Shown here: positions 992 through 55,846 of the stretch, piece after piece
Numbering within the stretch: the stretch's first letter is position 1
Layout: the number at the start of each line of letters is the position of its first letter
From: Klebsormidium nitens
Lineage: Eukaryota; Plantae; Klebsormidiophyceae
Direction: 5' to 3'
DNA: 64,000 nucleotides
NCBI GenBank assembly: GCA_000708835.1
Contig: DF237061.1
Coordinates: 124,001-188,000, forward strand
The notes under the pieces: generated by a model
Told to the model about the DNA's origin: nothing
Databases searched by the model: none
The model's input: the letters and a program-made list of their open reading frames with translations, nothing else
Made by a program: the position numbers and the translations under genes

Positions 992-2539
992 GAACGCTTG
1001 AAAGGACGACCAGGTTACAGTAGTTTGGTTGAGATTGTGTACTTCGACTTAAAGCATACTTGTAAGGGGGTTGTTCAGCAAACGAGGGCGTCTGATACAT
1101 ACGAAGAAGAACACGTCAAGCTTGTGAGAAGAGAGCATGGAAGCGGTCCGTGCTCCATGTACAGTTTCCATTGGGTTAAGTAAATTGCTAGCGGCAGGAA
1201 AATGACGCCGTTTCATACATGAACGGGCAGTGACGAGATTGACAGTGCTTTGAGTAGAAAAGAAATGCACATATAGTACAGCTTAGGTTCGAACACGTTG
1301 ACAGTGAGATGACGAAGGTTGTCTTGGGGTACTGTCAGTCAAGATATGCGCCATTATCTTCCACCGCTTGTTGTGGTCCCAGCACGTGCGTACCAGCTTC
1401 AGGCAGGCAGGCTCAAGATACGGGTGCCCATGCACTAAGCCGGCCAATTTGCGCCCTACACGAACTTCAACGCACCACTCATCATCCACTTATAGCAGTA
1501 TCAGGGTCTTCTTTTATTATCCCCGATTTCTACGTGCTTCAGCGACTCCTTGGATGCAGTCCCTGTGGTTGCGGTCGGGCGGCCCGAGCACCCAGTTTCA
1601 CTTTATGACTTTGCTTGTTTAAGCAGCCTGACGCTCGGTGTACACACGGACACGTTTTGCCCAATCGACTCCCACATTAAGCATTTTGCACCGCGTAGCG
1701 GTCCCGAGTACTTGTAAGTGTAAATCTGCTTCAACCGAGACGGTCCAGGGCACTATAGGCATTGAAGATTGGTAAGTATTATACCTTGAGCAGACTGTTA
1801 ACTTAGCGTGACTGAAGCGTTACTTTTTGTATCAGGATCGGTCCGTGGCATTCGGGGCGTTTGAACCAAGATTAAACTCGAGCAAAAAGCTCCGCATGTC
1901 GGGCCGATTTGCTGCCGAGGGCGATTTTGGCCGCACCCGGAACTCGGGCAGAGGGCCCGCACGGCAAAATTTAACTGCTACGGCGCCCGAGACATATTTC
2001 CGCGCTATAGCCCGGTAAACCGCCCGCCACCAATTTGCACTGTTAGCGGTCTCGTGACTCTGTAGTAAGACAACACCTAAGTTGCAGGCCTACATATGGA
2101 AACTTTGGTCTAGCTTATAGCTGCTGTCACAAATCCGCGGCCTGCAACTGAATGCTCGAGCCTTCCATGAGAGGGAGGATCGAGGAGCTACAGGGTGAGG
2201 CGGGGGGCTCTACTAAGTGCAACAGCACACGTGCTCGGATTCGGGCCGGCAATCCATGCTGTACACGTCGACTAGGATGCATGAGAGACAACAAGCTGTG
2301 CGCAGTGGCTTTCCCATCCAAGCCCTTGCCACAGCCAGTCAACGGATCGTTGTGGATAACCGTTTTAGCATTACCGACATAAGTATTGATAGTCTGCTGG
2401 ACCATGCTGACCATGTCGAGATGCTCTTGGGAGTGGCCTGGAATGTAGCTTTTCTCAATTGTTGAATAAATTGGATGTATATACCGTGCAAGAAGCATGC
2501 ATGCAATGAGCCTAGCCAAATGCAGGTTTCAAGCACAAG

Positions 2540-5500
2540 CTATATTACAAAGGTTGCATCGTCGGAATCGGGTCTAGCAGCTTTTGCATGCAACTGGTGT
2601 TGCCTAGCCTCTCTGTCGACTACCTCAACAGCAAGTCGGGCTAACCGTTCGACCTTCGTCTCTTGAGAATCAGCAGAAGGGGCTGCACGGCCTTTTCCCA
2701 GAAAGGGCTTTCTCTTTGACAAACTTTTTACCTGTGAGAAGGCCCTCACAAGATCAAACCTCTTCTTTCTACGCCTGAAGGCAGCCCTGAGAGCGGCAAG
2801 ATTCTCAGCCAGCCTTGGATGCCGCGAAAGCACTACAAGGGCAGACTTTTCAAACGCCACCCACAGGGATGAAATCAAGATAATATGGAGTAGAACGAGG
2901 TAGAGTCCGCTGAAATCGTCTAGGGACAACGCCCCAGCTTCATCCTCCTGCAGCCAATAAAGAAGCTGCACCTTTATGGAAGTGCCAACATTTGTGGACC
3001 TTCATCAGAGACTTGGGACAAACTATTGAGATCGACTGTGCCTTGCTTTGCTCACAAGTGGAGGCACGATGGTCACATTGATTGGGTTGTTATGCAAACG
3101 TGTCGGCTGCTACAATGAAGGACGTCAATAAAGGTTGGAGCTTGAACTCAGAAGCGATGAACAACGTGCAAGGGCATGACATGAGACTCGCACATGTCCT
3201 GGACTACATGACTTGAAGACGCACCTGCCCCAATATGGATGCGCATTGACTGCTATTGTAGATCCACTTGTTGTTCAACGTGTCTAAATAGCCGTTCGCT
3301 TTGAGACGTTCCATCGCTGTATTTATTGGTTTCGTGTACGAAGAATTTTTCTGCACCAAATCACGAATCTTTGTAAGATAAATCTTGCAAACGTTGGCAG
3401 AAGAAGCATACTAGACTAGCAAGGGTATCCTGTGATTTAGACACGCTACTTTCTTGTTTCTAGATTAGCCAAAAACAACGGGTGGAATTTGAAGTGGTCA
3501 AGTCCAATCACCACCTAAAGATACGTGAAGACATAAGGCCTGAGTTCGTCTGACTTACTTGCAAGCCCATGACAAGCACGGCAGGCCCGAACGGGGTACC
3601 AACAACTTCCAAATCACAAGGCTTTAATCCTGCGAAGTAGATAAGTGATGGCAACTCTGTGATGTATGCGATAACGCGTCCTGAGCGAACGGCCTCCACA
3701 CCGCCTATCGTTGCGTTTGCCGTCTGTAGACGAAGACAGGGAAAAAATGAAAAGAAAGGCAGCATCTGATTGATAGGTTGGAAGGCTGTTGTCAGACGCG
3801 GCAGACACTTGTAGAGCAGGTCACGAGTGAGTTGAGCAGTTGAGCAGGCCGGCTCGTTGGAAAGGTAACACAAGCAACAGACTGCCAATTGGGCGTCATG
3901 TAAGACACGGTCATCATAAGCGAAATCATTGGTGCTAGCTGTTTCATGAAAAGACTTTCAGCCTGAAGGACTCCGTACATGTCTAACCGAGTCAAGCTGA
4001 GGTCACTCGAAGAGGGCCTTAGTACCTCAACTTCTTTATGGGAGCCTTAGCAACATTTAAGAGGTTCGAGGGGCCAGAGAAATGAACGAACCATAGTGTT
4101 TACCTTTAGTTGAGGCTGAAGAGTGAGGATCTGTGCGTCAGTGCTTTGTGTCATGTATGTGTAGTAGCCTCCCCCGGAATTCACTGCGAAACTCTCATTA
4201 CTCCTGAGGATATCTTGCAAACTAGTAACGGTTGGGATGAGCTGATTGGCTGTCAGCACAGAGGTGAAGTTTGCCTGCAAGCAAAGGACACGGAGGCAGT
4301 ATTGAACATGTCATCAATCTCCACCAGTTGTGTTCCATCGTCTTAGAGAATTAGCAGGCCACAGCAATAAATCAGAAGTGCAAAACGGTGGTGAGGGGGA
4401 GGATTCCCGTTTTAAAAGATAAGCTGTAGAAATAGATGATGACAAGCTCACGAGAGCCTTTACGACCTCACCGTGTATGCAGAGATCAAGATGATCATGA
4501 AGAAGTAGAACCCAGCACTTGAGATGCGGATGGACCAAGATCGGCTTCGGGGCATGGGGGCGTTCTGATTGAGGGTCTGCAAGAAGCAAGCAAGCGGAAT
4601 CTCGTGAGGCCAAATGAATACATATGAACTCTCGGCCTATTGGCTTGTACAGTAGTGTACACTGCCTACGGAGTTGCCAAGAGACAAGGAATCCTATAAA
4701 AAGGAGGTGTTTGGAAGACTTGGAGCCTCCGAAGATGCTGTTCTGGTGCAAGTTTCAGCCTCCTAAGGCCCTATTTGGTGTCCCCACAGTCTTCCAGAAG
4801 AACATGCTTTCTATGCTTTTACACCATCAGCTACTCAACTGACTGGAGCCCTCAAAACTTATCTTTGCATTTCCAGACTCATTGCCACTCAATGCTTCTA
4901 ATCTGCGCGGAGAACTCAAAATGCGCCTCTGCTCACTCACCATAAGAACGTCCACTAGGTATGACTTGGAGGCTGCATACAAAAGCAGGAGTATCAAGGA
5001 TCTGCCAACCTTTGTCAGGTTGCGTAACAAAGTGCTAGAGGTGTTCAGTTTCTGAATTGCAACAGGCGACATCAAGAGTTAGGCCCTTGTCCGAGCGGCG
5101 TTGGTAGGCCATCACTCAAGGTCTGCATGCAACCAAGTCTGCAAGCTAGATCTAGTTGAAGCTGTACGACCACGGCAACTCAGTTGGTACAGTTGCTCAA
5201 GGTGAAGATACTCACTATCCTGTAGCACATAGCGCTGTTCCTCCGCTTGCGTCCTCATGTTCCGGATCCGCACAACTTTGTAGTTCCCAAGAGGGGACAT
5301 CCAGCTCAAGATATTTAACACCAAAGCAAAGCCAATCACTGTGCAACCCGCAAGAACCCACAAGGAAGGTGCGAAGGGCTTGGTAAAGACTGAGGCAGCG
5401 TCTGATGCAATCTGCACAAGTAAAATTATCAATTCCTCAGCTGGGAGTGCTGAAAGGAGGGGGAAGGGGCAGCAAGGGGCAGGCCCCCTACAGCGGCAAA

Positions 5501-6534
5501 GCAAAGGATAAGGAGAATCGCCCCAAGCAAGCTAGGTCAGATTGGATGGCTTGACAGACGCAGGCAGCTTACTCAGCAAGTCAAATGCAGCGCGTCCCAT
5601 CAACCAACAATATGCTGGTTACCTTCTTTCCAACACCTCATGATGAGTGCTAAGACTTGCAGTGCGCTTGTTACTGCAGAGCTTTCAAGGAGAGTCCGTA
5701 CCGGCCTCTTGATCAGGATGGCAAGCCCTCGCCCATCGAAGGGGAAAGTAAAGTCCATGAAAGGAAGCCTTTCCCAACTCTGACTGAAAGGGAAAGCAGC
5801 GATGTCTGCACGACCATAAATCATCTCCCCCGCTACACCTGGCAGGAGATACACAGGGAAAGATTGGTCAGAAAGTGGCAGTGCAAGAGCAGCGCAGTTC
5901 CTGAGGGTGCAAAAGAGGCAGCTCCATGTGGAAGCGCAGGCCTATTCAAAACCCTCTCTGTGATGATGGAGAGGAAGACTACTTCGGCGTGCACAGATCA
6001 ACACCCAAGAGCTCCATCCCTGAGTGCAGACTGAAGGATGACCACTAGAGGGTGGTTATGGATGCAACCTAAAGTAATAGGGTCCGCTTATAGCAACACA
6101 GCCATTGAGCGGGGTAGAGCATAACGCTGCCCCCCAAACAAGCTGACAGGTTAGATGATCCGCTCATCCCAAATGGTTCCAGCATCTGTTTAAAGGACCG
6201 TGTGATCAGTCAGGTCACACACCCAGCGGCCTTTCTCAATTCCCGTCTGGTTGCAGGGTCAGCCTCCAGCAGCAACAGCATGTGCATTCTGCCATGCTGC
6301 AACCGCACGCTGACACTCACCTGTCCAAGTCCCATTCTGGAGGACGCCTCCGGTGTTGCTTGGCGACTTGTGGAACTTCAATGTTGCATTAAGCCCAGCC
6401 AAAGCGAGCACAACAGGCAGGAGATCTACCAGCAGACCAGACCAGCCATAGGGAGAGGAGGAGTTGGAGTAGATGAATGGGGGCCGGTCCGCAGCTACAA
6501 CCCGCAAAATCGTCGCATTATAGGGCGCTGCCAT
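2540..6534 (-). CDS. GLR: Ionotropic glutamate receptor-like channel A (no ATD; S1-M1-pore-M3-S2-M4-tail), 517 aa, 9 coding exons
   Basis: Exons 6534-6321, 5838-5702, 5411-5216, 4972-4941, 4576-4472, 4274-4104, 3723-3559, 3350-3225 and 2947-2540 total 1554 nt in frame, all GT-AG. Motifs: [32 protein letters not shown] (M1), AYTANFTSVLT (M3 gate), AYITE and PCDL (S2), LSLDDFSGLY (M4). Confidence 0.9.
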
Positions 6535-7189
6535 ATTGGGCTTTGCAGAAGTCGTTTGCTGTAGACTTTCAGGCCTAGCTGCGTGTTTTTCAGTGAGTGG
6601 AAGCTGCAGGAGTACAGGCAAAGAAGGTTTTCACGCAAGCAGCCCCACAGCTATGTCCAGTGGAGTTGCGAGCTCTCTTTGCAGGTGGAATGGCTAACAT
6701 TATTTCAGCTTGTAGATCAGGCGGTTGTGCTGTTCATTGATTGCATTGCGGCTGGAAAGGGTAATAGCGTCGTGAGGGTCAATAGGCGGCGGAATAAGCA
6801 CAGCTAGCTGCACAAAAGGGTCATGAGGTTCGCCCGTTTTGGGCTCCTACAGTCTGGGGCGTGCCTGAGTCTCTTCCAAGTAATATAGTACTAGTAGGCG
6901 AGGAGGAAAGGAGGCCCTGACTCCTATATTAGCCTGATCAGCCAGCTAGGAGCTAGGCTGTGATTCTGATCTGCTGCTGCTGGCCCAGCCTGCCCAGGCG
7001 GCCCAGCCTGAGGGGCTTCTGAACTTCAAGTTCAATGAAGGCTGCAGGGGACAGCGCCCCAAGGGCTGAATCCTGATGTCAACAATGAAGTGGGATGCGG
7101 TGGCAAGAACGTTGGAACTGGAAGCGACATTCTGACGTCATTGGGATCCCCGCGCCGGATCCTTATACCGTATATCCGTAGTCAGTGGC

Positions 7190-7385
7190 ACGATTTTTTC
7201 ACGCCAAAAATAATTATATTTGAAATGTTGCCAAATTATTGGAGCTGAAAGTTGCCTGGCTTTGTTATTCTCTTTAATAACAGGAGGTTTGACCAGGGCC
7301 CAGGGGTTTAATAAGAGAGTTGTATGAAATCAGAAGAGAGAAATAATAATTGTTGAAAACGAGGTGGTGTGAAAACGCCGCGCCA
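7190..7385. promoter_or_regulatory. AT-rich core of the probable bidirectional promoter between the divergent GLR genes
   Basis: Markedly AT-rich stretch within otherwise GC-balanced DNA, lying between ATG 6534 (-) and ATG 8289 (+). A TGACGTCA palindrome is nearby at 7133-7140. Function is inferred from position only. Confidence 0.4.
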
Positions 7386-7637
7386 CTACATTGTCACGTT
7401 CCGTCGAAAGCGGCTCGCCAGCTGCTTGTGTAAGCCTGAGCCGAACGGCCAGCAGCCCGGGCCCCGGCCGGTTTTCGCGCCCACTCAGCGTACCTGCCGG
7501 TCTCTCACGGTCGGGCAGCCTGCTGACGAGTCACGAAAGTGACGTCTCAAATGTTGATTCGTTGTACCGTACTTGAAGAAATTAATTCAGGCAATGATGA
7601 ATGAAGCAGGGGTTCACCGTTCTGGGAGACTGGGCCC

Positions 7638-7841
7638 CAAGACTTGCCACCCAACTTTCACCGGTGCCGGCTGTCTACCGGCTGGCCACACAGGCTACCG
7701 GCGCCCGGCCGCACCGGGCGCCGGTTTTGCCTAGGCGCCCAGCATTTTTTGCCGGCTGTCCAGCCGGTGGGGTCCCTTCGGCACCGGTGCATCTGTCATT
7801 TCTGCCGGCCAGGTCCAGCACACCGGTTCGTGGCGACTTTG
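7638..7841. mobile_element. Degenerate copy of the CCGG-rich MITE family also found at 36747-37018
   Basis: Shares ordered blocks with the 36.7-kb element: gccac(c)caacttt, gccggc..tctaccggc, ccttcggcaccggt, gccggc.aggtcca and acaccggttcgtggc. The termini are eroded and no TSD was found. Confidence 0.65.
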
Positions 7842-8288
7842 AAGTCGATCCTGTAAGTCGTAGGCTGTGACCGTGTATGGCGTCACACTGACGTGTCTGG
7901 TTCTTTACGATATCCTTGGCAGGACGCAGAACAGCCAGCCTGCTGCCACCTCCGCAAGAACTCAAAAGCACGCAAGCGACGCTGAGCGACACAGTGGGGC
8001 GACGCCAGCTTCAACGGAGGTCCGGCCTCTCCAGAGTCCAGACTCCAAAGAGATTTTGCAGCAACGTCTCTGCTGCGCTACAGTCACAGCGTATGTATCC
8101 TACAGGTACAGCCAGCTTATGTCAGAAGGCTGCACGGCAGGAGGGGACGGCATGCAGAGGAATGAACTAAGGAAGCAGATCAGACACCAGAGTCGATCAA
8201 GATAGTTGGAGATTGACGCAAAGTGAATCAATATTGAATAGGGTCCAGCTGGTGATCGTCTGCTGTGTCAAACACTCGCTAGTGTGGT

Positions 8289-11200
8289 ATGGCGACAAAT
8301 GTCAGACTCGTGACAGCCCATCGGCCCCCCTTCGTGTTCAAAAGTAGTAACCCAGCTGGCGTCAAGTGGTTTGGAATGCTTGTGGAGCTGGTTCCATTGC
8401 TCTTCCAGTATGCCAACCTGACCGTGACTCCCCGTTATTACGAGTCGCCGCTGCCTATTGCTGGGGACCTTCTACCAAACGGCACTTGGAATGGTGAGAG
8501 GGGCTTTCTTTGGAGAAAGTGGGTTCAGACAAGGATTGTGATGGACCCGAGTGTTATTTGAAACCAGTCTTCTGACTTCAACTTGTTTTCCTCTTGTTGA
8601 ACAGAACACTCTATAGACTAGACTAGCCATTGTTGGTCTCTTCTCTCCACTTGCTTTTGGGCCTTGCGTCTAGGACCTACAAAGGATCAGGTTCACGAGG
8701 TCCAGCCAGGATCGTGGCAGAAGGGACACTGATCCCAAATGAATTGAGGTTAGGAAGAAAGCAGTCAGTAGCTGACAAAAGCTGCAATCAGAAGCTTGGA
8801 ATACTAGCGACCGCTCCACGGAAGACCTGAAGTTACAGCTCAGGACACCCTCCATATAAGCGAGCAGACTGAGCTGGGGCAGATGTAGTACTGTGCTTGA
8901 ATGGTGGAGTAGGATCCTAGATAAAGATGAGTAGATGAGGAGGAGACTTTAGGGCAAGCAGGTAGCATCATTCGCTGATTTGAAGAAATGCGTCTTCAGC
9001 TTGCTGCCAAGTGGGACCCGTACCGGACGCTTTCTTTTCTTTTGCAAGTGTGGGAAGGAGCACAACTGATTGTCATGATTTCCTTCAAGCTGCTGAGACT
9101 GAACATCTGATTGGGTTTGCTCTAAGCGGCTCGCGCTAGACTACACAAGATCTTCGCGTGCTTCTTTGAAGGCTTACATTCGTCTCACACTCAAAATTTG
9201 GCTGCAGGAGTAACTGGGGAGCTGCTTGCTGGGCGGGCGGACATTGCAGTGTTTCCAATAGCCAGGGGCGTTGGTCCCTCCTCAGTCATTGACCTCACTT
9301 ATACTTACGATGAACTCGGACTACAAATGCTCGTCAAGCAAGAGGTGAGCAACATATTTGATGTAAGCAGTTTCCATGCGGTATTCCTTTGGCCCAAGCA
9401 TCATCCAATAAGTAACATTCCCGCTGTAGCTCATATAGCATCACATCTACCACAACGAGACAAAAAGAAGGACGTTGATGGTTGAGGCAGGCAGTCATAA
9501 ATTATCTGTACAAACTAACAGTATCTTTTCCTGATGAATCGATGTTTTGTGCCTGTAAGCCTTTTCCATTTTGACATGCCTTAGTACCGGCGGGCACGCA
9601 TCTGCTTACAGATTGCATGAATCTTGAGTCTTCATCATATCAGAAGGGTTTTCTGGCCCTCTCATCGCTTCTTCGCTTCTCTCCTCCGATGCAGCTCACA
9701 AGTGCTGCCAGCTCGAGCCTCTTCCTGGCCCCTTTTACGACCAGCCTTTGGTTGGTCCTTGTGGCCACCGTCGTTGGAATGCCTGTTCTCATCCAGATTT
9801 TTGCAAAGCTGTCTCCACTAGGAGCCTTTGAGCTCATCAAGCTACGGAACCTGACTGCTAAAAGCCGTACGCAAGAATTCAAAGTGGTGTGCGGTAAGAC
9901 GGTACTTTTACAAGCCTCCGACATCTATCATTCAGCAAAAGGCAGAACCCAAGTGATGATCTTCTCTGCCTTGATTTGCTTGTGTACTGTTGGCGATTCA
10001 GTTCCCACAGAAAACAATCTGATTGTCGGAAGATGGTCAAGCTTTTTCTTGACTTGGAAGCTGCTGTGTGTTGTAGAATCCCCTTCAAGGCAGAGCGAAA
10101 AGATTGCATTTTGTGCCCTTGGAGGACGCCATCTCATGTTGTATCATTACTGACCCGTATCTGTTATTGCTGAGTTCAGAGAATGACTCCTATTTTATGG
10201 ATATCCTCCAGGTAAGTCTCAGTCGCTCAGCCTTTCCAAAAAGACTGTGACGGACAAAGCGATTCTGGCAGATCACCCTGCTCCGCATAGAAGTGAACGT
10301 GCAGGACGTAGCAGAAAAAAGCCAGGAAGCGTCCTGTCGAAAGAGGATCCAGCAAGTCAAGGAACGACATTGGCAGTTGGTTCATCGGGTGAGGCACTTG
10401 TGAGGTATGTGGATCGATGAGGAGCAATGGAAATGTGTGTCTGGCTTTGAGTCGAAGCAGAGTCACAAACGTCCGAGTCCTGATCTTGCAGGCTGCCACG
10501 TCTTCCAATGTCGAAGGCCCCACGGCCAAAAGCTGGGCAGTCAGACTGCCCATTCTGTACTTCTACTTTTTCATGGTCGTCGTGGGTGCAGCTTACACCG
10601 TAAGTTGGTTATGAAGGAAATGTTGGAATAGCAACATCCTTCTTTGCGATCGACAAGCATTTCAGTGCCCTTACGATGTCCCCAACTAGAAGTCTCACAG
10701 CCGTATAGCGATTGTAGGATGTTACGTGCAGAAGATCAGAGCTTCGTTTGCTGGCTGAAAACTTGTTGCTAACAGGCGGGCCCGTGCCCAACATATGCTT
10801 CGCATGCTTTGATCCATTGTCCTGCCTCCGAACGCTTGCATAGGACACACCTTAACTCGGAACGTCGTTCTTGCAGGCGAGCTTCGCGTCGTTTCTCACG
10901 GTCAACAACTTCTCATCAAAAGTCAACAGCCTGGAACAGCTGGCCAGAGATCCCACTCTCAAGTATGTCATCGAGGACAATGGTGCCACCCTCGCTTACT
11001 TCCAAGACAGCATCGACCCCATCATCCAACAGCTTCGACCACGCCTTCAGGTATGCTATTGCGATGGTTTGCTCCACCACCCTTCATATGAGTTGAAGGT
11101 TGGATAACTCAGCCTCAAGGCTGTCCTTCTAATTAACCTTTTGGATATCCTTCTCTCAGAGGCTGCTTTGGTATAGATTGGTATGCTCGTAGAGCATTAT

Positions 11201-12597
11201 GCCAACGGCGAATGATCAAGGACTTTTGCCCTGTGGAATCTTGCTTGTAAGTTTTGAATGTTGAGCTGACCTTTCAGACATGTATATGCTCCTCGCAATG
11301 AATTTTCAGCCCAGTGAAACTCTGTGCGGAATCCTTTTGAATCTGCACGTTGGTATATATCTTGCAGACACCTCAAAACCTCTCTGTGAATCTAGACTTC
11401 TTCAGCTTCGTGCCTTGGAGCATCGCCTGTACTTGGTCTCGTTTTCCCGGTCCCGTGATGAACACCGTTTGCAATTAAATAAACGCCGTGGTATGATCTT
11501 GCTCTGCTTCCTCGTGCAGACTGTCCGAAGCATCAGGGACGGCGTCGCAGCTGTCCAATCGGGCGAGGCCTCTGCATACATCGCAGAGAGTCACGTTTTG
11601 CAGCACATTGCCGGACAGCTGCCGTGCAACTTGCAAGTGGTGGGGGCCTTATTTGGTCCCAACGGCTTAGCCCTAGGCGTTCGCCGCGGCTGGCCCTATA
11701 CACAGGCGCTCAATGTTGCCATGCTTCAACTCATGCAAAACGGTGTTGGGGATGAGCTTCGAAGGAAGTGGGTCGGAAACCAAGACATCTGCACATCTAG
11801 CAGCCAGGTTCGTTTCTTTACCGTCATTGCCTACGGCCAGCTCAACAACTGCCCCGACTTCTTCTTTTTGCAATATCAGTGTTTCCTGATGCATCTATTT
11901 CCTGTGCCCTACAGTCTGATCAAGATCAGTCAATTGGCCCGCATACACTTACCGTGCATAAGGCGAGAGCAGGACAGCCTTGTTGTCTCGCCTGCAAACG
12001 AAGGGCACAGGAATGTCCGCAGCCCATCGTTGACATTCAAATATCTTCTTTGATTGCCCATCCGTCGAGTAGATCCACCCCAAATCCACCTTTCGCAAAG
12101 AGCCCGGCCTAAGGCTTGTTGTTGTTGGTAGCTTAACCACCAGGCGTGGAAACGGTCTGATGCATTTCTTTCCGTCTTTTCTTCAGGTATCTAACCGAGC
12201 CCTCCAGTCAACAGACTTTTCTGGCCTCTGGTACACTCTTTTTTGTGCTATTGCTATTGGGGTCGTGATCATAATCTGGGAGAACCTGATGGTCAACGTC
12301 CTCCAAAGCTTTCCGGCTCTCCGGTCGTCCTTCCTATCGGGCACAAACTCTTTGAAGTACCACGAGAGCGTAGGCGACTTGTTTTCCGCGGGTGATGAAG
12401 ATCGTGCTGACTTTACAAATAACCCTGCTTATGAAGTCCCAGCAGGCAGCGCTAGTGACAGGATCGCTAAGCTGTCCTCACCGACCACCTCGCATGAAGC
12501 AGGAACCCTCAAAGACGAAAGTGTGGATCGGATCTTAGACCAGGGCGAGTATGAGTCTGCCGATGCTTGTATGACGGATCTAGCTGCAATGCTTTGA
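8289..12597 (+). CDS. GLR: Ionotropic glutamate receptor-like channel B (no ATD), 517 aa, 8 coding exons
   Basis: Exons 8289-8493, 9208-9344, 9695-9893, 10180-10211, 10492-10599, 10877-11050, 11520-11807 and 12187-12597 total 1554 nt in frame. Motifs: NGTWNG-x-GELLAGRADIA, FLAPFTTSLW (M1), AYTASFASFLT (M3), AYIAE and PCNL (S2), TDFSGLW (M4). Intron positions and phases match GLR-A. Confidence 0.9.
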
Positions 12598-13917
12598 TAG
12601 GTAGTTGTTGACTAGTTGGTGCACAATCGTTGCATCTCAATTGAGTAATTCAACTTCCGCTGGTAGAAACTTGGTCTTACGTCTTATTGCAGTAGCGTCT
12701 AGGTGAGCAACTCTAGAACGTTACAATATTCTAGATTGAGCCCAAATGGTCAATGGCATCATTGAAACGCGGGAGATAATGTCACGCGGATCACATGAGG
12801 GAACTCACGGTGCGATCGACTTGAATCATACATGCATTCCTTCAACATCTGAGACTCGTGAAAGTTCTGAACATGCCAGCCCTGTCCGCTTCAGCCCGTA
12901 TAACTCGTTCATATCTTTCAACGGCTCCATAGCCTCTATGTACCGATCTTGGAACAGACTGTCCCCTTACGAGTGAAGGGAATCAAAGCTATGAGCGACT
13001 TTATCATCACCAGCTTTGATGTGTTGCCTTCAGTCATCACAATTTAGAGTGAAGTCTGATGACGACGTAAGTCGGACCGGATTGTCACTATGCCTAGGCG
13101 GCGACCCCCGGGGACTCGTACCGGGCACCGCAGAAGGGCCTCGCGCCGGTGCATTATTCGGCATCTTGTGGACTTGGTCAATCAGAAGCTAGCGCTCGGG
13201 GCGAGCCTGCCGGGCGACTTCCGGCTCGAGGAGGACACGAACGGTGGCACGCGCAGCGGCGCTGGGAGCTCAACGAGCAGCTTGTACTAAAGCTGAGGGA
13301 CGCCAAAACGAAGATCGATAGAATCCAACTTTAGAAAATGTGCAGGTAGACTCAAGATTTCAGCTTAGCTCTGGTAGTGTCCGACAGTGGGCAAGGACAA
13401 TCATTGAATCACATAGAACGCTGCTTGCGCTGGCTGACTCGATCACGGGAAAGACAACTCAGAATCTTCCAAATCATGTTGACTTGACGTCTGAGTCGGA
13501 ACCCTTGTTCCATACTCCGTTATGCTTAAGAAACCAAGTCATTGCCCCGCCACACTTCACGCTCTGTGTATGAATATGCAGTACTTGTTCCCTGCATGCA
13601 GGGCCTGTATTCGGATTGTCCCCAAATGATTGGCCTATGACTCTGAACAGATTCAGATTTGTCAGAGGCATTTACCCTTCCGTCAAAGTCCTGGCGTTTC
13701 GACCGTGTCACTGCTAGTCTTGGGGGCCGCTTACCCAGCAAGACGACAGCTGCTACGCGTGCTCACTGGCATCAGACTCATCTGTAGACTTCGTTGACTT
13801 CTAGGAACGCTGGCTGTCCTGTGATTTCTTTCCTCTCGTAGACTGTCCAATCAAAGGCTCGATTAGTGGAACTAATGCACCATCTTTCGCAAGCACGGCA
13901 AGTATCCGTCATTTCGC

Positions 13918-16900
13918 CTATGGTATGTCTTTCTCTTTTCTGGGCGACGGCTGGCCGCAGCCTAGGGCTCGGAAGAGGACCCCCGCTAGCAGCACCAGCA
14001 TACCGCTGCGCAAGGAGGGAGAAAAGAGCCGTCAAACGACAGACAGGCCGTATCGACTCCGTACAGGAAACAGCAGAATTCTGGGAAAGCTTCAGAAAAA
14101 GACGATACCGCAAAGGGTGCGAGGAAGGATCATGATTCCTGGAAGTCGAGTGGCGACAGCATTAACGTACTCCGTCGAGGTTGAATATGCACTCTGATCA
14201 AATCCTGACCGTTACGAGGTGCAGCATCGACGTTAAGGCGTCAAGCATCGGGGCTGGGGACCAACTTTCGAAATATAATCAGGCCCCAAAACAGCGTTTC
14301 TGCGCACAAATGAAACGGCTTCCTGATCCGTCCCGGAACAGTCCACCACGTCGGGCCCGTTACTTCCCCTCCAACGATTCTTGAAGCGTTGAAAACCATC
14401 TTGCCTTGTCGCTCTCCTTCGCAGCTGCCTCCTCAAACGGAAGTCACGGCTCAAAGAACGTTTTGACCATCCAAATCATGGGCAAAAGACAGAAAGTCGA
14501 AAATGCAGCGACGAAAAACGTCGTAAGAAGATTGTTCGCCAGACTTACCTGACAAAGCCGGGCGCCGTCGTGCCTAGCCGCGTCACCAACAGCCCCGCTA
14601 GAGTCGGTCCCAAAACTCGACACGTGGACATCAGCGTGTCCGCCAAACCCAATAACTGACCGACCTGCAGGTGACGATCGCACTGCGTGAGTTAAACGAG
14701 CTACTCAGAGTCCCAGAAAGTTACGTTGCAGGTCATACCTCCACCAGAAGTCTGGTTGGAGAGTTATACGCAAATGTCGATTTGAAGAGAGACTGTCGCT
14801 CATACGGAGAACGAGAATCTTGCACTCAGCAGATTGTATTGTTTCAGTTCTTCTTAAAGTGAAAACTCGGTTGCGAGTCTTTGGCATGCTATTTCTACGA
14901 TCTACGTTTACTTGATTTGCACCGCTCGCTCTTCGCAAGTCCGTGGGGGTTCTCACCGGTGCTCGAACAAAAAAGGAGCCGATTCAGTCCGTGGACGAGC
15001 GACACGCGCGTTGGACACGTACCTCCGAGGATGGCACCGCTGACGTCAGCAGGGCCGTGAAGGTGGTTCTCACGACACCCCCCGCGAGCGCGACGGGCGC
15101 CAACAGCACGACGAGCGACCGGATCGAGGGGCCCAGGGAGGCTGCCACGTAAGCAAGGCCAAGTGACGTAATGCCGGCCTGGATGAGGAACCCCTCCTTG
15201 GGATATGACGCGACGAGGGGACGAATGGCGAAGCCTTGAACGAGCGTGGTTAGGAAACCCTGTCATAAGAAGACTGCGGGTCAGAGTGGTTAAGGGCGGG
15301 TTAGAGCGGATTAGCTGTGGGTTCACTTATTCCTTCAGTGGACGAGTGGTCAAGTGTTGGTATGAATATTTGAAGGACAGTCGTTGCTTCAGCTGATGAG
15401 AATTACGTTAATATGTTATTTCGAACGACTCGGCGGCTGTCCTTTCAACTAAGTTGGCAGACAAAGGACGATGAAACCGCAGGAGCACTCTTTACCAGCG
15501 GAGACTGATACGTCTTCAGATTCAAGTGACGCGGCACGCAACTCGAAGCCAGCTGTGACTGCTCACGACGTTCCGCACCCGATCCGAGATTGACTCATGG
15601 GGCGCACAGTCAAAGTCCAGAAAAGGCTGGAGCAAGCTGCGTTGCAAGACCTCGTTCTTCTGAGGGAATCGTATGCAATGCAAACGACTTGCCTAACACG
15701 GATTTCATCTTACATGTGCCGTTCGTCCAACACGCTCTTCACAGTTTTGCGAAACTTCTAAAGGCAGTCCGTAGGAGAACCTGGCAATTCAGAAACGTCC
15801 GAACCGTGCATCTTGTGCTTCGAACAAGGTCGAAACATTGACCGCCAGTCATCCGACTCCGCCACCTTCTGAGCAGGAAACTGAGGAAAGCGCAAGACCC
15901 AACAGGGAGGAAGAAGAAACATGACACGAGATTTTGGCCCTTAACCATAGATGGTGATGGGCTGATTATGGCTGGTCAAATGATGTTTATATGTTCAGTA
16001 ACCAGGTCTGGGCTTTAACCAGCCCCGGAACAAGATTAACGCCGGATTGTTTGTCAAACAAACTGACACTCAGTCTGGAAATCAGCCTGGTTAGAAGCCA
16101 AAACTTGCCTGGTAAGAGATGAGCATCCCGTTTTGCCGCGCGTCCAGCTCAAACCGGTACAACACGAGGGTCGTGAAACCCTCCCGAAACACTTGCACAG
16201 CAAGACCCAACACCGCGCGCACCGCCAAAAGCGCACCCACTTTTGGCCGCCGCAAGACCGCAGCTTGCGGAAGCACGGATTCCAGACGCGCGTGCCAGGA
16301 ACGAATTCGCGGCGGTAGGGGGGACGGGAACGGGCTTTCTGGACCCCCTTTGTCCGAGGTCGGGCCCGGGAAAGCTGGGAGGAAGTAGGAGGCGAGTGTG
16401 GCGTTGCAGAGGAAGAGGAGCGCGGCGAGGCAGCCGGGGAGGCGCTGTCCGCCGTATCTGCAGAACACAAAAGAAATGAAAACTATATAAGTAAGGGATC
16501 GCAATGATGATACCGAAGAGAATTATTTGGGCTTTCAGTCTTGTCTCTTTGATAGGAGTAAATGGGGTTCGTCTCATTCGAGGGCTTTTGGCTAAGAGAA
16601 AGACGCTGCCGCTTTGACAGAACGAATGTCAAGGTGCTGAATCCTGTTTAACGATCGGTACTGTCGAGAATGCAGTCAGCTGTGAATGATTGGGGCAATA
16701 TTATGGGCAATGGTTGTCCAGGTCAGCAACGGGAATGAGTCACTTCGTTCGTCGAGCACGTTTTAAAGGCGGGGACGTTGGGAACGAAACAATTGGCGAC
16801 CATACAGATATTTCGTAGAGCTTCCAAAGTACGGCTTGTCGTGTGCTTGCTCAATTATCATAAAGCCGTCGATTCGTACGACATGACATGCTGTGAACAA

Positions 16901-19663
16901 CGACACAGCAGCTCGCCGTTCAACACGAAAGCGAAGGGTAGTACGTCGTCTCTGGCAATCACCTTCCAGATCTCATCCCGCCCTGCAATCTAGAGCCTGA
17001 TTCTCAAGGAAAGCACTGAGAAGATTCCACGTAGCTTCTACTATTCGTGAAAGTGATCGACAAGGAGTCAGAGGATGCGGGAGCAATGAAAGTGAAAAAA
17101 TTACCTGTGCAAGAAGCCCCCCAGCATGGGTCCCACCATGAATCCTAGCCCCGAGGCGGTGGCCATCCGTCCGAAATCAACGGACCGTTCGGACCGGGAC
17201 ACGCGGTCCGAGATGTACGCCTTTACGCCGTTGCTGGAGTGGCGCACCAGGCCCGTGATAACTCGGCTCAAGAACAGGACCTGAGAGCAACGGGTAAAAC
17301 GTCAATCAGGTAAAATCTTCTTTTAGGATTGGTCCTCTCCAGTATGTTCTTGACAGATTGCAGAAGAGTAGGGCACCAGATCCGTTGCTAGTCTAACTCG
17401 AAAAGCGGACTGTGCTCGACTGGCGACACGAAATGGATGCAAGCCTTTGAGAAAGAATGGTCCTTTTGAAAATGAGAAGACCAGAGTGCCGAACAGGAAG
17501 ATGTAATGTTCCATGCTGCACCAGTGCTCAATATAGAGTTTGAACTGAGCGGCAGGATATAATTCGAAACTGATGCACATCGAGGAAAGAGATGGCCCCC
17601 TCGATGTGCGACTTTGACGAGCATCAGTCAGGGAAGGGGGTTCGGAGAGACAAAGTCGACGCCGTTGCTGGAACCGATGACATTAAAACGACAATTGCTC
17701 CTTCGAAGTACAACGTTCGAACAAGCATTAGCAGGTACTGCGATTCAAGACGAAGACGTCGAGGTCGTGACGCCCCAGGCATGGCATGGCTCGACTCGAG
17801 AGAAGGACCTGAGAGTTGTGACACAGCAGAGAGGTATTTTGATATTGTGAATGCAACTCGAAAGGACGCAGGGGAGGCACTTGTTTGTCCGCCATGGCCG
17901 ATACAACTTGTAATTGCTGGACATTGATCGCAGACAAGTGTTGTTCCTGTGAACGAAAACCGGAGAAGCAACCGTGTCCACCCATACGCACAGTGTAGAG
18001 GGGAGTTATTACACAATCCGCAGCCCCCAAATGGCTTACCTCTAGGCTGCGGCTGAAGCCAACCAAGCCGTAGCCAATGGCAGTACCAAGGTATGCGGCC
18101 ACGATGATAAAGTGACGGCCTTTGCGGTCACTGAGTAAGCCCTGGAGGCAAAAAGAGAAAAGTCCAGCACCTTGTCGGCTTGTGAGAAATCAGACTGATT
18201 TGGTTGTTCTTAATGCTCGGGACTGTAACATGTGGGTCCTGACAGTTGCGATTCTCAAAATACCACCCGGAGTATAACATGGGCAAGTTCGAGATGCTGG
18301 CATGGCACCCTCCGCAGATGTCCAACCCCTCAAAACCGTCGAGGGGGCACAGGTTTGAAGCTTGCAAGACTTGAGCTTACAGATAGCGAAAATTGATTGT
18401 ATCTACACCCTTTCGGCGGTGCTTCCTCCGGGAGCTCGGAAACAGTTGAAGATACAGCTTTGAATCAGAACTGCCACGTGAAACGACTCACATCATTTAG
18501 TCTCTATAGAGTGTTTTTCTCAAACTGAATCGCCAATGTCCGAAATTGAGTTCCAATATTCGGAACCGACTGACTGTGGGACCCACACCTATAAATTCCC
18601 TGGATGGTGGTTTGAGAGCTTTTGCAACAACAGCACTTCAGGCCGTTGCAAAGTCGCCTCAGCTCGTTGGCCCTTCACAATGAAAATCATGTTATGTACT
18701 ATTACCGAATTTTAAGGAACACAAGAGGACGTTCCACTTGAGGGCTGGAAAAACTTTGTTCTCCAATTTGTTTGAGTCGCCTCTTGGAGAACTAGAAATT
18801 ACCCTGCCTAGCTTCATTTGCCCCTTGACTTGATCTGAGCTCAGTGGTTTAGCTCGTTGAATCCACTAAGAAGATGTAATGCCAAGGGCGCGATCATTGC
18901 AAGCCTTTTTAGTGGTCTGATTGAGTACTTTACCATCCATCTGAGACAAGACGCTTGTTTAAACGCACGAGAAGAACGTTGACTTACCACCATAGGCCCA
19001 CTCGTGAGCTGCAGGGCGCCATATGTGCTGGAGATCAAGCCCAACTGGAAAGGGGTCGCGCCTAGTTCCTTCATCAGAGGAACCAGCATAGACATCACCT
19101 GCAGAGTAAGAACGCCATTCTTGCAGAGCTGTTTTTGGTCCACTCAATGCAAACACATCTGTTTGTCATCTGACGGGATACGGTCTAGAGAACACCACTG
19201 ATCCCCTTATGAATGAAATCCCCGGTCGGTTTACTGCGCTTTTTGAAGCTGCGGCACTGCCCTGGCTTGCGAAAGAGGACAAGCTGCAGCAAAATCAAGG
19301 AACAAGTTGAGGCTTGGCAGCTTCTCAACACTGCTTTAGGACAGAGAACTTAGAGCAAAGATGTGGACAGTTTTCAGGAGAAACACGTTGACGGACCAGC
19401 CCGTGCGTCATCCATCCCCCTTCGGTTGGTGCCATGATCAGTTCTCCTCAATTACAGAGCTCATTTGAGATCAGAGAATCAGTGCGCTTGGTTGTCTTCT
19501 TGTGCAACAATGAGGTTAAGCACAGTAGACTGATTGAGAACCTCACCATGCCCGCAGCCATAAGATCCACGAACACCAGGAGCAGCAGGACGGATCTCCA
19601 TGAATGGAGATAAGCCGGTGGCTGCCGGGGAGAGCCTGCCGCCAGCAGCGGCAGCTCAAACAT
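13918..19663 (-). CDS. Major facilitator superfamily transporter (MFSD9/SLC22A18/TetA-like), 431 aa, 8 exons
   Basis: Exons 19663-19547, 19098-18988, 18141-18040, 17280-17105, 16457-16109, 15259-15023, 14664-14549 and 14005-13918 total 1296 nt in frame. It has MFS motif A (GLLSDRKGR), SRVITGLVRH, GLGFMVGPMLGG and RVLGPTLAGLL. One intron has a GC donor. Confidence 0.88.
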
Positions 19664-20588
19664 GCTGTCGATCAGCTGCTTTTTCTAACTATGTCAAAGT
19701 TCTTCCAACCAGAACAATGCATTGCTCATTAATCTGGACAATTTGACAAGACTTCCAGCTGGCAGTTGCACAGATCCAATTGCTGAAAGTTGCAGCTCCC
19801 AGGTGGTGCAATCTGAGGTGTAGGAAAGTTGTAGGTGCCAGCTCGATTATCGCACTCAAGCAGGTGCAAGCGGCCTATTGCCCCGCTGAAGGGTTGAATG
19901 AAGCAGTCGAGAACTGCCAAGTGAGCCCGTCAAAGACGAGACAGCCATGTTGCAGCGCACACACAGCTGCTCAACCTCTGTTTCAGAGCACTTTGTTTCT
20001 GTGAGCAGCATCCACTGATCCAGAGCCTGATGTGCCTGAGGCCAGCAGAACCAGTATACGGTATACGAGCTCCGAAAATAGCGCGCAATTTTGTCAGTGC
20101 GTTTCTGACTTTGACAAATCCGATTTTCTTCGAGAGCCCGTTTCTTGATGAGCAGCAACCATGTCTTGCGGTATCATACGAGAGAATCTGGTGCACATAA
20201 TTTCTGCTTTGGTCCCATATGGTGGGCGCGTTCGTAAATTGACTCTCATATTACCTGAGGCAGCACAGGTTGGAGATGCAATGCTTGACAGCACCTTCGA
20301 TCCACACACATACGACCTTCGATCCAACACTCCCAACTTCGTGTGTGTCACTTTCGAGTTCAGGCAAACACAAGCTTTGCGCTTCTTTGGATACAGAACG
20401 ATTTACTTTTAATACGAAGCCTGAAAGGTCAAGCCGTCAAAGCGTTCTCTTCATATTGCTGGGTAGTTCCAGTAGTTTGGCGCTTTCCAGAGTTTTTCAG
20501 GTTTCCGCCAGGTCTCTGATTCCGAGCTGCTCAAGGGTCAACAACTATCAGTCGAACCGGCGATCGCCGTTATCTGCTCTGAGGTACA

Positions 20589-54200: not shown

Positions 54201-55846
54201 GTCTTTTTGCTTGCCAAGGAAGCGTCTGTGTCTTGTACAGGCCAGCGGCACTCACAGAAGGAGACAGCTTCAGCTGAAACACTTTTCTGTTCAATGGGAG
54301 TAGAAAAAGGACTATTTATACAATGTTTTCCAAACCAGAAGCTCTTTCATTGGTGTGGCCTCACCATGGTGCCGAAGCCAACCAGTGTCCCCGCAAGAGC
54401 CGGGACAGCAGTACTTGCAGACGGGCTTGCTTCAATCACCGGGCCATAGACGGTTGGCTGAATCGCTTCCCAAACGATGGCGCCGCAACCCAGACCTCCT
54501 AAAAAGGTGCTCTTCCATCGGAAGCCCTGACTCTTCAGTAGGGTTCCTGTACATCAATAAATCTGTCCGCTGAGAAAGCATTCTGCATGCAATAGAAGGT
54601 TGCAATAGACAGCACAAAAGTCACACTCCATGAAAATCCTTTGTGCTCAAAAGCTGCCCCTTGATCATCTTGACAATAGACCTGCGGAGCGCTTCCCTTG
54701 AGACAGAATATTCCAAAGCTGGTAACCTCAACAGGCGGGCANNNNNNNNNNNNNNNNNNNNNNNNNNNNNNNNNNNNNNNNNNNNNNNNNNNNNNNNNNN
54801 NNNNNNNNNNNNNNNNNNNNNNNNNNNNNNNNNNNNNNNNNNNNNNNNNNNNNNNNNNNNNNNNNNNNNNNNNNNNNNNNNNNNNNNNNNNNNNNNNNNN
54901 NNNNNNNNNNNNNNNNNNNNNNNNNNNNNNNNNNNNNNNNNNNNNNNNNNNNNNNNNNNNNNNNNNNNNNNNNNNNNNNNNNNNNNNNNNNNNNNNNNNN
55001 NNNNNNNNNNNNNNNNNNNNNNNNNNNNNNNNNNNNNNNNNNNNNNNNNNNNNNNNNNNNNNNNNNNNNNNNNNNNNNNNNNNNNNNNNNNNNNNNNNNN
55101 NNNNNNNNNNNNNNNNNNNNNNNNNNNNNNNNNNNNNNNNNNNNNNNNNNNNNNNNNNNNNNNNNNNNNNNNNNNNNNNNNNNNNNNNNNNNNNNNNNNN
55201 NNNNNNNNNNNNNNNNNNNNNNNNNNNNNNNNNNNNNNNNNNNNNNNNNNNNNNNNNNNNNNNNNNNNNNNNNNNNNNNNNNNNNNNNNNNNNNNNNNNN
55301 NNNNNNNNNNNNNNNNNNNNNNNNNNNNNNNNNNNNNNNNNNNNNNNNNNNNNNNNNNNNNNNNNNNNNNNNNNNNNNNNNNNNNNNNNNNNNNNNNNNN
55401 NNNNNNNNNNNNNNNNNNNNNNNNNNNNNNNNNNNNNNNNNNNNNNNNNNNNNNNNNNNNNNNNNNNNNNNNNNNNNNNNNNNNNNNNNNNNNNNNNNNN
55501 NNNCACTCTCACGGATTTGGTGAGCTCAGGGGTCATCCGGTGCACCAGTATTTAAGTGGTCGCTGCCGGACCACGTCAAAATCTACTACGGTACTCGATG
55601 TTGATCAAATTAAGAGCTCATTTCAATAATCACATCTCGACACAATTCTACCAGCTGGTGGCCAGCTTATGACAACAAAGCAGCGCAGGCAGCCTTCAAT
55701 GTGCTGACTAGCAGCTCACCTCTAATGATACTCGAAAGGCCGCTGAGCCTCCCACTACAGGCAAGATACAATGTTGCCGCAGCACCTATAAGCACGCCTC
55801 CAGCAAGGGATGCGGCTGGGGTAAAGTCAGGTGAGATCTGCGGCAT
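51297..55846 (-). CDS. Fused YeeE/YedE-family (sulfur transport/TsuA-like, DUF6691-type second half) membrane protein, 354 aa, 9 exons
   Basis: Exons 55846-55720, 54546-54365, 53954-53753, 53514-53423, 53217-53102, 52789-52723, 52335-52239, 51822-51713 and 51368-51297 total 1065 nt in frame without needing the N gap. Motifs: GGVLIG...[61 protein letters not shown]. Confidence 0.88.
53524..53585. repeat. Intronic tandem duplication, 32-bp period, just upstream of a YeeE-gene acceptor
   Basis: aactttcgaaa(a/t)gtcaacgctcaggcttga starts at 53524 and at 53556. Confidence 0.85.
54742..55503. other. Assembly gap (762 N) within intron 1 of the YeeE/YedE gene
   Basis: Run of n characters. Confidence 0.99.

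Follow-up and report, generated by a model that had tools for sequence, protein, structure and literature searches.

The window analyzed here is a stretch of 64,000 nucleotides of nuclear DNA from the streptophyte green alga Klebsormidium nitens (contig DF237061.1, positions 124,001 to 188,000), in which two genes for glutamate-receptor homologues, gene A and gene B, were arranged head to head. Each gene contained a 32-nt microexon located between the coding regions of the membrane segments M1 and M3. Gene A (2540..6534, minus strand) was described by a nine-exon model of 517 residues with the order S1, M1, M2, M3, S2, M4 and tail, in which every border was canonical (AG/GT) and the single stop codon was at the end. 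Gene B (8289..12597, plus strand) corresponded to the public model GAQ82471.1 (P0001, 488 residues), annotated as "glutamate receptor [Klebsormidium nitens]", to which a 96-residue plus-strand exon of the gene was 100% identical. The public model began at an internal methionine (8376) and was without the first 29 residues; the in-frame ATG at 8289, upstream of that start, adds the first beta strand of S1. The start codons at 6534 (minus strand) and 8289 (plus strand) were separated by approximately 1.7 kb, and the reading frames of both genes were intact throughout.

The microexon of gene A was located at 4941..4972 on the minus strand and ran from phase 1 to phase 0. It read CC TCC AAG TCA TAC CTA GTG GAC GTT CTT ATG, was preceded by ...gtatgcag and followed by gtgagt, and encoded (T)SKSYLVDVLM. 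The preceding exon 3 (5216..5411, minus strand), which encoded the pre-M1 segment, M1 and the M1–M2 linker, terminated in phase 1 at 5216 with ...CAG GAT A|gtgagt, that is, with a GTGAGT donor. The following exon 5 (4472..4576, minus strand) started in phase 0 with TLNQNAPMPRSRSWSIR... and encoded the remainder of the M2 helix, the Q/R-site column (Gln when aligned without gaps), the filter limb and M3 as far as AYT; exon 5 by itself gave a Pfam Lig_chan match. The spliced product was ...EEQRYVLQD-T-SKSYLVDVLM-TLNQNAPMPRSRSWSIR..., running on to ...TLNQNAP...SWSIR.

The same arrangement was observed in gene B. Its microexon (10180..10211, plus strand) was also 32 nt long with phase 1 to 0, read AG AAT GAC TCC TAT TTT ATG GAT ATC CTC CAG between ...gagttcag and gtaagt, and encoded (E)NDSYFMDILQ. 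The exon upstream (9695..9893, plus strand) contained the pre-M1 segment, M1 and the M1–M2 linker and ended in phase 1. The exon downstream (10492..10599, plus strand) started in phase 0 with AATSSNVEGPTAKSWAVR... and contained the rest of the M2 helix, the Q/R column (Ser), a Glu at the column of GluA2 D590 and M3 to AYT. The spliced product was ...EFKVVC-E-NDSYFMDILQ-AATSSNVEGPTAKSWAVR..., running on to ...AATSSNVEG...SWAVR. The microexon peptide was already present inside GAQ82471.1 (...VVCENDSYFMDILQAATSSNVEG..., within the longer stretch ...VVCENDSYFMDILQAATSS...). The gene B microexon is thus part of the coding sequence in GenBank and is not new to the databases. For both genes, the borders, phases and contig joints agreed with the 32-nt phase 1-0 exon that the initial annotation had predicted, and the two spliced peptides (SKSYLVDVLM|TLNQNAP...SWSIR in A and NDSYFMDILQ|AATSSNVEG...SWAVR in B) were as it had given them.

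Splicing of the 32-nt exons

The inclusion of the microexons in transcripts was evaluated with the contigs of four public runs (X1, X5, X6 and X7), which were placed on the window from 4535 to 10530. These runs were called RNA by guess only, yet intron-less contigs are impossible from genomic DNA; moreover, the runs contained about one fifth of the sampled words of the stretch, as exons alone would give. In gene A, the joints 5216|4972 and 4941|4576 were found exact to the base in a contig of run X1, and the contigs of X1 and X7 ended or joined at 5216 and 5412. In gene B, the joints 9893|10180 and 10211|10492 were found, again exact to the base, in run X1 and in a contig of X7 that was 1529 nt long, and the M1 exon was joined upstream at 9344|9695. 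Run X7 came from a relative at 95–99% identity, and the splice joints were thus present in two runs and two strains. Every stretch skipped in the contigs was bounded by GT..AG on the strand of the gene. Both microexons are therefore real, transcribed and spliced in as had been predicted.

The initial annotation had further proposed that skipping of this exon would shift the frame and switch the channel off. The frameshift itself was borne out by calculation from the sequence, with a stop in gene A 52 residues on and before M3. A contig that joined the M1 exon straight to the M3 exon was not found in the four runs, in which rare isoforms are dropped from contigs. Strong donors of the type GTRAGT followed this exon in all four K. 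nitens paralogues, namely A, B and the two described below. Furthermore, no other AG..GT exon with a length of 3n+2 in the flanking introns encoded an M2-like peptide, so that an alternative or mutually exclusive M2 exon was not apparent. Each of the two 32-mers occurred once in the window, and no extra copy was found with up to 3 mismatches (0 expected by chance). Judged from these features, the 32-nt exon appears to be constitutive, and the proposed switch would be a matter of arithmetic only.

The intron after the microexon of gene B (10212..10491, plus strand) was unspliced in contigs of X5 and X6 (10167–10530) and of X1 (10314–10518), and the X5/X6 contig started 13 nt upstream of the microexon. 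These contigs may represent pre-mRNA, DNA carry-over or intron retention, between which contigs cannot discriminate.

Receptor family and age of the exon

Two more paralogues were located elsewhere in the K. nitens genome, P0005 (GAQ88650.1) and P0011 (GAQ85569.1). The Lig_chan domain (PF00060, gathering cut-off 30.8 bits) was matched from M1 to M4 by P0001 (gene B) with 56.8 bits, by P0005 with 71.8 bits and by P0011 with 66.5 bits. For Lig_chan-Glu_bd (PF10613, cut-off 30), the scores were 48.1 bits for P0005, 63.8 bits for P0011 and 28.2 bits for P0001, the last just under the cut-off. Exon-wise Pfam scans gave matches to both domains, and those of gene A were weak. According to phmmer and MAFFT, the S1 and S2 halves of a split, SBP-type ligand-binding domain stood on either side of the membrane segments. 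The gate motif of M3 was AYTANFTSVL in A, AYTASFASFL in B, SYTANFASYL in P0005 and AFTANLASVL in P0011 (SYTANLAAF type), and the Y-T-A of M3 was nearly invariant across an alignment of 22 sequences. Chains of the ligand-binding and transmembrane domains of AMPA receptors ranked first both among the PDB sequence matches (E ~4e-36) and in the fold comparison with Foldseek. The 35-residue M3 exon of gene A gave chance matches only against the PDB sequences, the query being too short. As far as sequence comparison can tell, A and B are diverged members of a K. nitens family of short ionotropic glutamate-receptor homologues with the order S1-M1-M2-M3-S2-M4.

The proteins encoded by A and B started at S1, 7–10 residues ahead of its first beta strand, and had no amino-terminal domain (ATD). 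A signal peptide was encoded by neither gene, and an in-frame stop was located upstream in gene A. The start regions were covered by uninterrupted contigs at 6318–6744 for gene A (run X1, extending past the ATG) and at 8073–8492 for gene B. Without a signal peptide, M1 might serve as a reverse signal anchor for the S1 half of approximately 130 residues to cross the membrane. The ligand-binding Arg of S1, in the column of GluA2 R485, was present in A, P0005 and P0011. In S1 of gene B, at approximately 9231–9308, Pro occupied this column, which was nearly invariant across the 22 sequences; gene B possibly does not bind amino-acid carboxylates in the normal manner.

The 32-nt exon was also found in the two further paralogues. 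In P0005 it was located at 4983–5014 of locus L001 and encoded (M)LDSFLIDVLM, and in P0011 it was located at 5094–5125 of locus L002 and encoded (K)NGSFLVDALM. In both, the place and the phase (1-0) were the same, and the exon was followed by gtaagt or gtgagt. P0011 had lost the next-but-one intron and retained the 32-nt exon. Identities with gene A were 34% for B, 50% for P0005 and 42% for P0011. The presence of the same exon in four paralogues at 34–50% identity indicates that the exon is older than the divergence of the family. The motif that the initial annotation had read as S-Y-x-x-D-x-L in both genes was real in the form S-[YF]-x-x-D-x-L and was common to A, B, P0005 and P0011, with the Asp invariant in all four. 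The S-W-x-x-R stretch and the YTA of M3 were likewise kept across the four paralogues. In a word-index protein search with P0005, the query and two distant receptors with an ATD were the only matches; further members of the clade were not recovered, nor was the public protein of gene A.

The next-best full-length relatives were ATD-less homologues of green algae, from Volvox reticuliferus (GIL75501.1), Volvox africanus and Tetrabaena socialis, at 28–35% identity. They shared with the K. nitens proteins the start at S1, an aliphatic residue in the column of the animal Trp, a filter limb with an A-P motif and an intron just ahead of the M2 helix. However, they had Thr, Ile or Gln in place of the Asp, and their M2 helix and filter were encoded by one exon of approximately 86 nt, with no microexon. 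In the V. reticuliferus homologue P0024 (locus L003), an intron was located near the upstream border, and the helix and filter were on this single exon. The intron after the helix, which was lacking in Volvox, would therefore be a gain in the Klebsormidium lineage or a loss in the volvocine algae.

Several observations were made at the edges of the gene models and of the locus. In the public annotation, the product of gene A had 529 residues and spanned 1832–6534. In the segment 1832–2540, the open frame of the last exon stopped at 2540 in our model (517 residues), as against 1832 in the public one; the 3' ends of the two models thus differ by at least one further intron. The flanking genes in the public annotation were an aldehyde dehydrogenase (PF00171, 1–1000), located upstream of the end of gene A, and a major facilitator superfamily transporter (13900–19700), located downstream of gene B. 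A run of N at 54750–55499 marked an assembly gap in the window. The GC dip at 54–56 kb in the 2-kb profile coincided with this run of N and was rejected as biology.

Location of the exon in the protein and register of the pore helix

The initial annotation had equated the microexon with M2 and the selectivity filter, and this assignment was correct in part. The 32-nt segment was located between M1 and M3, within the Pfam Lig_chan match and in the stretch that phmmer aligned to M2 of GluA2. However, the microexon covered the end of the linker and the start of the helix only, and the Q/R/N site and the filter were on the next exon. The structures of gene B (P0001) and P0005 were predicted by AlphaFold2 with the 22-sequence alignment. 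In P0001, M1 was at residues 101–124, followed by a short helix from Y156 to T165 and by M3 from W177; in P0005, M1 was at 133–156, the short helix was from F188 to A196, and M3 started at W208. The short helix between M1 and M3 thus had 9–10 residues and was predicted with low confidence (pLDDT 54–59 in P0001 and 56–66 in P0005). According to these models, the microexon would encode approximately 4 linker residues and approximately the first 7 residues of the predicted M2 helix. The next exon, and not the microexon, encodes the end of the helix together with the Q/R-site column and the filter limb.

The register of the segment against animal receptors depended on the method. In phmmer, NDSYF of gene B was aligned with NSLWF of GluA2, the Tyr was opposite the Trp and a 2-residue gap followed the Met. 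In MAFFT on 22 sequences, the helix was gapless and the extra residues fell in the M1–M2 linker, with Met, Ile or Val opposite the Trp and Asp opposite the Phe. A third register was given by hhalign; this profile–profile alignment of M2 between the K. nitens trio and animal receptors was implausible and gapped despite an overall probability of 100%, and the register of M2 was treated as tentative. In contrast, phmmer and MAFFT concurred on the C-terminal half of M2. For the Q/R column, both gave Ser in B, and the MAFFT register, which is insecure here, gave Gln in A, Asn in P0005 and Leu in P0011. The residues of the initial annotation at this site, Asn in A and Thr in B, were 1–2 residues off this register. 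In the column of GluA2 D590, B and P0005 had Glu, and A and P0011 had Met. Two types of filter (4472–4576, 10492–10599, L001 and L002) were observed, one with N-A-P-M-P and no acidic residue in A and P0011, and the other bearing Glu in B and P0005. This distribution was at odds with the overall similarity, as A was closest to P0005, yet it shared its filter type with P0011.

The Trp of the pore helix, which the initial annotation had reported to be lacking in A and B, was indeed absent, but its absence was not special to them. The Trp column contained Met, Ile, Val or Leu in 8 of 8 algal or protist sequences (three from K. nitens, three of volvocine type and two uncultured), Trp in those from animals and bacteria, and Leu and Tyr in two land-plant GLRs. 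The Trp-Phe pair was lacking in the K. nitens proteins, in which the MAFFT alignment placed M, I or V in the Trp column and D in the Phe column. Of the eight algal or protist sequences, seven carried a polar residue in the Phe column (D three times, and T, Q, K and N once each) and one carried Ile; Asp was found in K. nitens only. The loss of Trp is thus a trait of the wider group, and the Asp is a local feature.

The K. nitens genes had in common with animal AMPA and kainate receptors (GluA2 and GluK2) the S1-M1-M2-M3-S2-M4 order, the YTA in M3 and an S-x-x-R before M3; in the MAFFT and phmmer alignments, gene A was GluA2-like in its Gln at the Q/R column, and B and P0005 were so in their Glu at the D590 column. 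They differed from these receptors in having no amino-terminal domain and no signal peptide, in an aliphatic-Asp pair that replaces Trp-Phe, and in the filter, which was NAPMP in A and SSNVEGP in B instead of QQGCD; moreover, an intron interrupted the K. nitens M2 following its second helical turn. Land-plant GLRs of the AtGLR3.4 type belong to the same superfamily, and their M2 is likewise divergent from that of animal receptors. However, the traits of the land-plant clade, a large amino-terminal domain and the [WFY]FSFST pore helix, were absent from the K. nitens proteins, in which coding began at S1 and M2 differed, and the two GLRs aligned here were 17–18% identical to gene B. KcsA-type K+ channels have a re-entrant pore helix (W67, W68 and E71) and a filter. 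KcsA carries the acidic E71 in the helix behind its filter. Its topology is inverted, the K. nitens proteins are without its TVGYG filter, and the Asp and E71 occupy different positions. Literature searches on the glutamate-receptor pores of Klebsormidium yielded passing mentions only.

Interpretation of the divergent pore helix

The explanation that we consider probable is that A and B are two diverged paralogues of a short ionotropic glutamate-receptor family, in which an old pair of introns brackets the 32-nt exon, M2 has a lineage-specific form, the Asp lies behind the filter and the exon does not act as a switch. The bracketed exon would supply the end of the linker and the initial two turns of the re-entrant M2 helix. 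This helix, with aliphatic-Asp for the animal Trp-Phe, would be a lineage-specific form of a segment that was already non-canonical in the green-algal and protist relatives. In scanning mutagenesis of GluR6, W582 and F583, which were equated with W67 and W68 of KcsA, were on the buried face of the helix, where they packed on the filter and the membrane helices and not toward the lumen (PMC2217257). If the gapless register is right, the Asp would occupy the position of GluR6 F583 and KcsA W68 and would be buried rather than pore-lining. The invariant Asp may thus pack behind the filter through this helix face, possibly through a hydrogen bond or a salt bridge, with the filter limb or the conserved S-W-x-x-R stretch as the partner. 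Its role would be to tune the geometry of the filter, with effects on conductance or selectivity, and not to bind the permeating ions directly. The 32-nt exon would be a remnant of intron history and not a regulatory switch.

Several points weigh against this explanation. Contigs drop rare isoforms, so low-level skipping may escape them, and unspliced contigs extend across the intron after the gene B microexon. The confidence of the M2 helix models was low (pLDDT 54–66), and the three alignment methods gave three registers for the segment. Furthermore, the Asp motif was found in no relative outside K. nitens, and its conservation therefore rests on four paralogues of one genome and one close strain.

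Other explanations were weighed against the same data. The pore helix might be canonical after all, if the Tyr or Phe of S-[YF] were the counterpart of the Trp, with [YF][FL] for WF and a helix or following loop longer by 2–3 residues. The Asp would then be at the position of GluA2 L581, facing M1, M3 or a basic partner residue, and its role would be purely structural. The phmmer pairing of NDSYF with NSLWF favors this alignment. In both AlphaFold2 models, this aromatic is also the very first residue of the helix, and 2–3 more residues than in GluA2 separate it from the S-W/S-L motif that precedes M3. However, this alignment needs a 2-residue gap within the helix, the one that MAFFT preferred for the 22 sequences leaves the helix uninterrupted and accommodates the surplus residues in the M1–M2 linker, and the Volvox-type relatives have the non-aromatic His, Thr and His at that column; a canonical helix was thus regarded as rather unlikely, although a serious candidate. 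The initial annotation had instead assumed that the Asp faces the ion path and confers unusual selectivity, and that regulated skipping of the 32-nt exon shuts the channel by frameshift. The Asp is indeed invariant in four paralogues that are otherwise 34–50% identical, the stop that skipping would bring into gene A comes after 52 residues, and in the gapless register the Asp (D159 in B) is 7 residues ahead of the Q/R column and so on the same helix face, two turns lower. Nevertheless, this combination appears improbable: no skipped joint occurred in the four runs, the donors were strong, the same register places the Asp at the buried GluR6 and KcsA position (PMC2217257), and the microexon encodes neither the Q/R site nor the filter.

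It was also considered that one or both subunits, mainly B, are not conducting glutamate-gated channels but degenerate or modulatory ones, whose odd M2 arose under relaxed or different constraint. The Pro of gene B at the ligand-binding Arg column (column 'R63') points in this direction, together with its Lig_chan-Glu_bd score below the cut-off, its M3 motif AYTASFASF instead of SYTANLAAF and the lack of a signal peptide in both genes. On the other hand, both genes are transcribed and correctly spliced with intact frames, the four paralogues share the M2 motif, the S-W-x-x-R stretch and the YTA of M3, and gene A retains the Arg, so that a non-conducting role was held to be quite improbable. 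An equally slim chance was given to a more far-reaching form of the idea that a carboxylate behind the filter replaces a residue of the buried aromatic cuff. In this form, the two filter types (neutral in A and P0011, Glu-bearing in B and P0005) would make the head-to-head pair A and B the two halves of a heteromeric channel, with selectivity or gating, for example through protons or divalents on the Asp, unlike that of every studied glutamate receptor.

A and B belong to a known kind of receptor and carry a lineage-specific pore-helix motif of putative function. The M2 loops of plant GLRs are too divergent from the animal ones for selectivity to be predicted from sequence (review, PMC11479355). 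Divergent M2 loops are the rule outside animals, and an unusual selectivity of the K. nitens channels is putative. For gene annotation, a gene finder that missed the 32-nt exon would frameshift the whole family, as all four K. nitens paralogues examined depend on this exon. The family constitutes a compact, ATD-less glutamate-receptor core of a streptophyte alga, with an invariant Asp at the place of the buried Phe of animal receptors. Provided that it is expressed, the family could reveal the importance of the aromatic cuff for the geometry of the filter in this superfamily.

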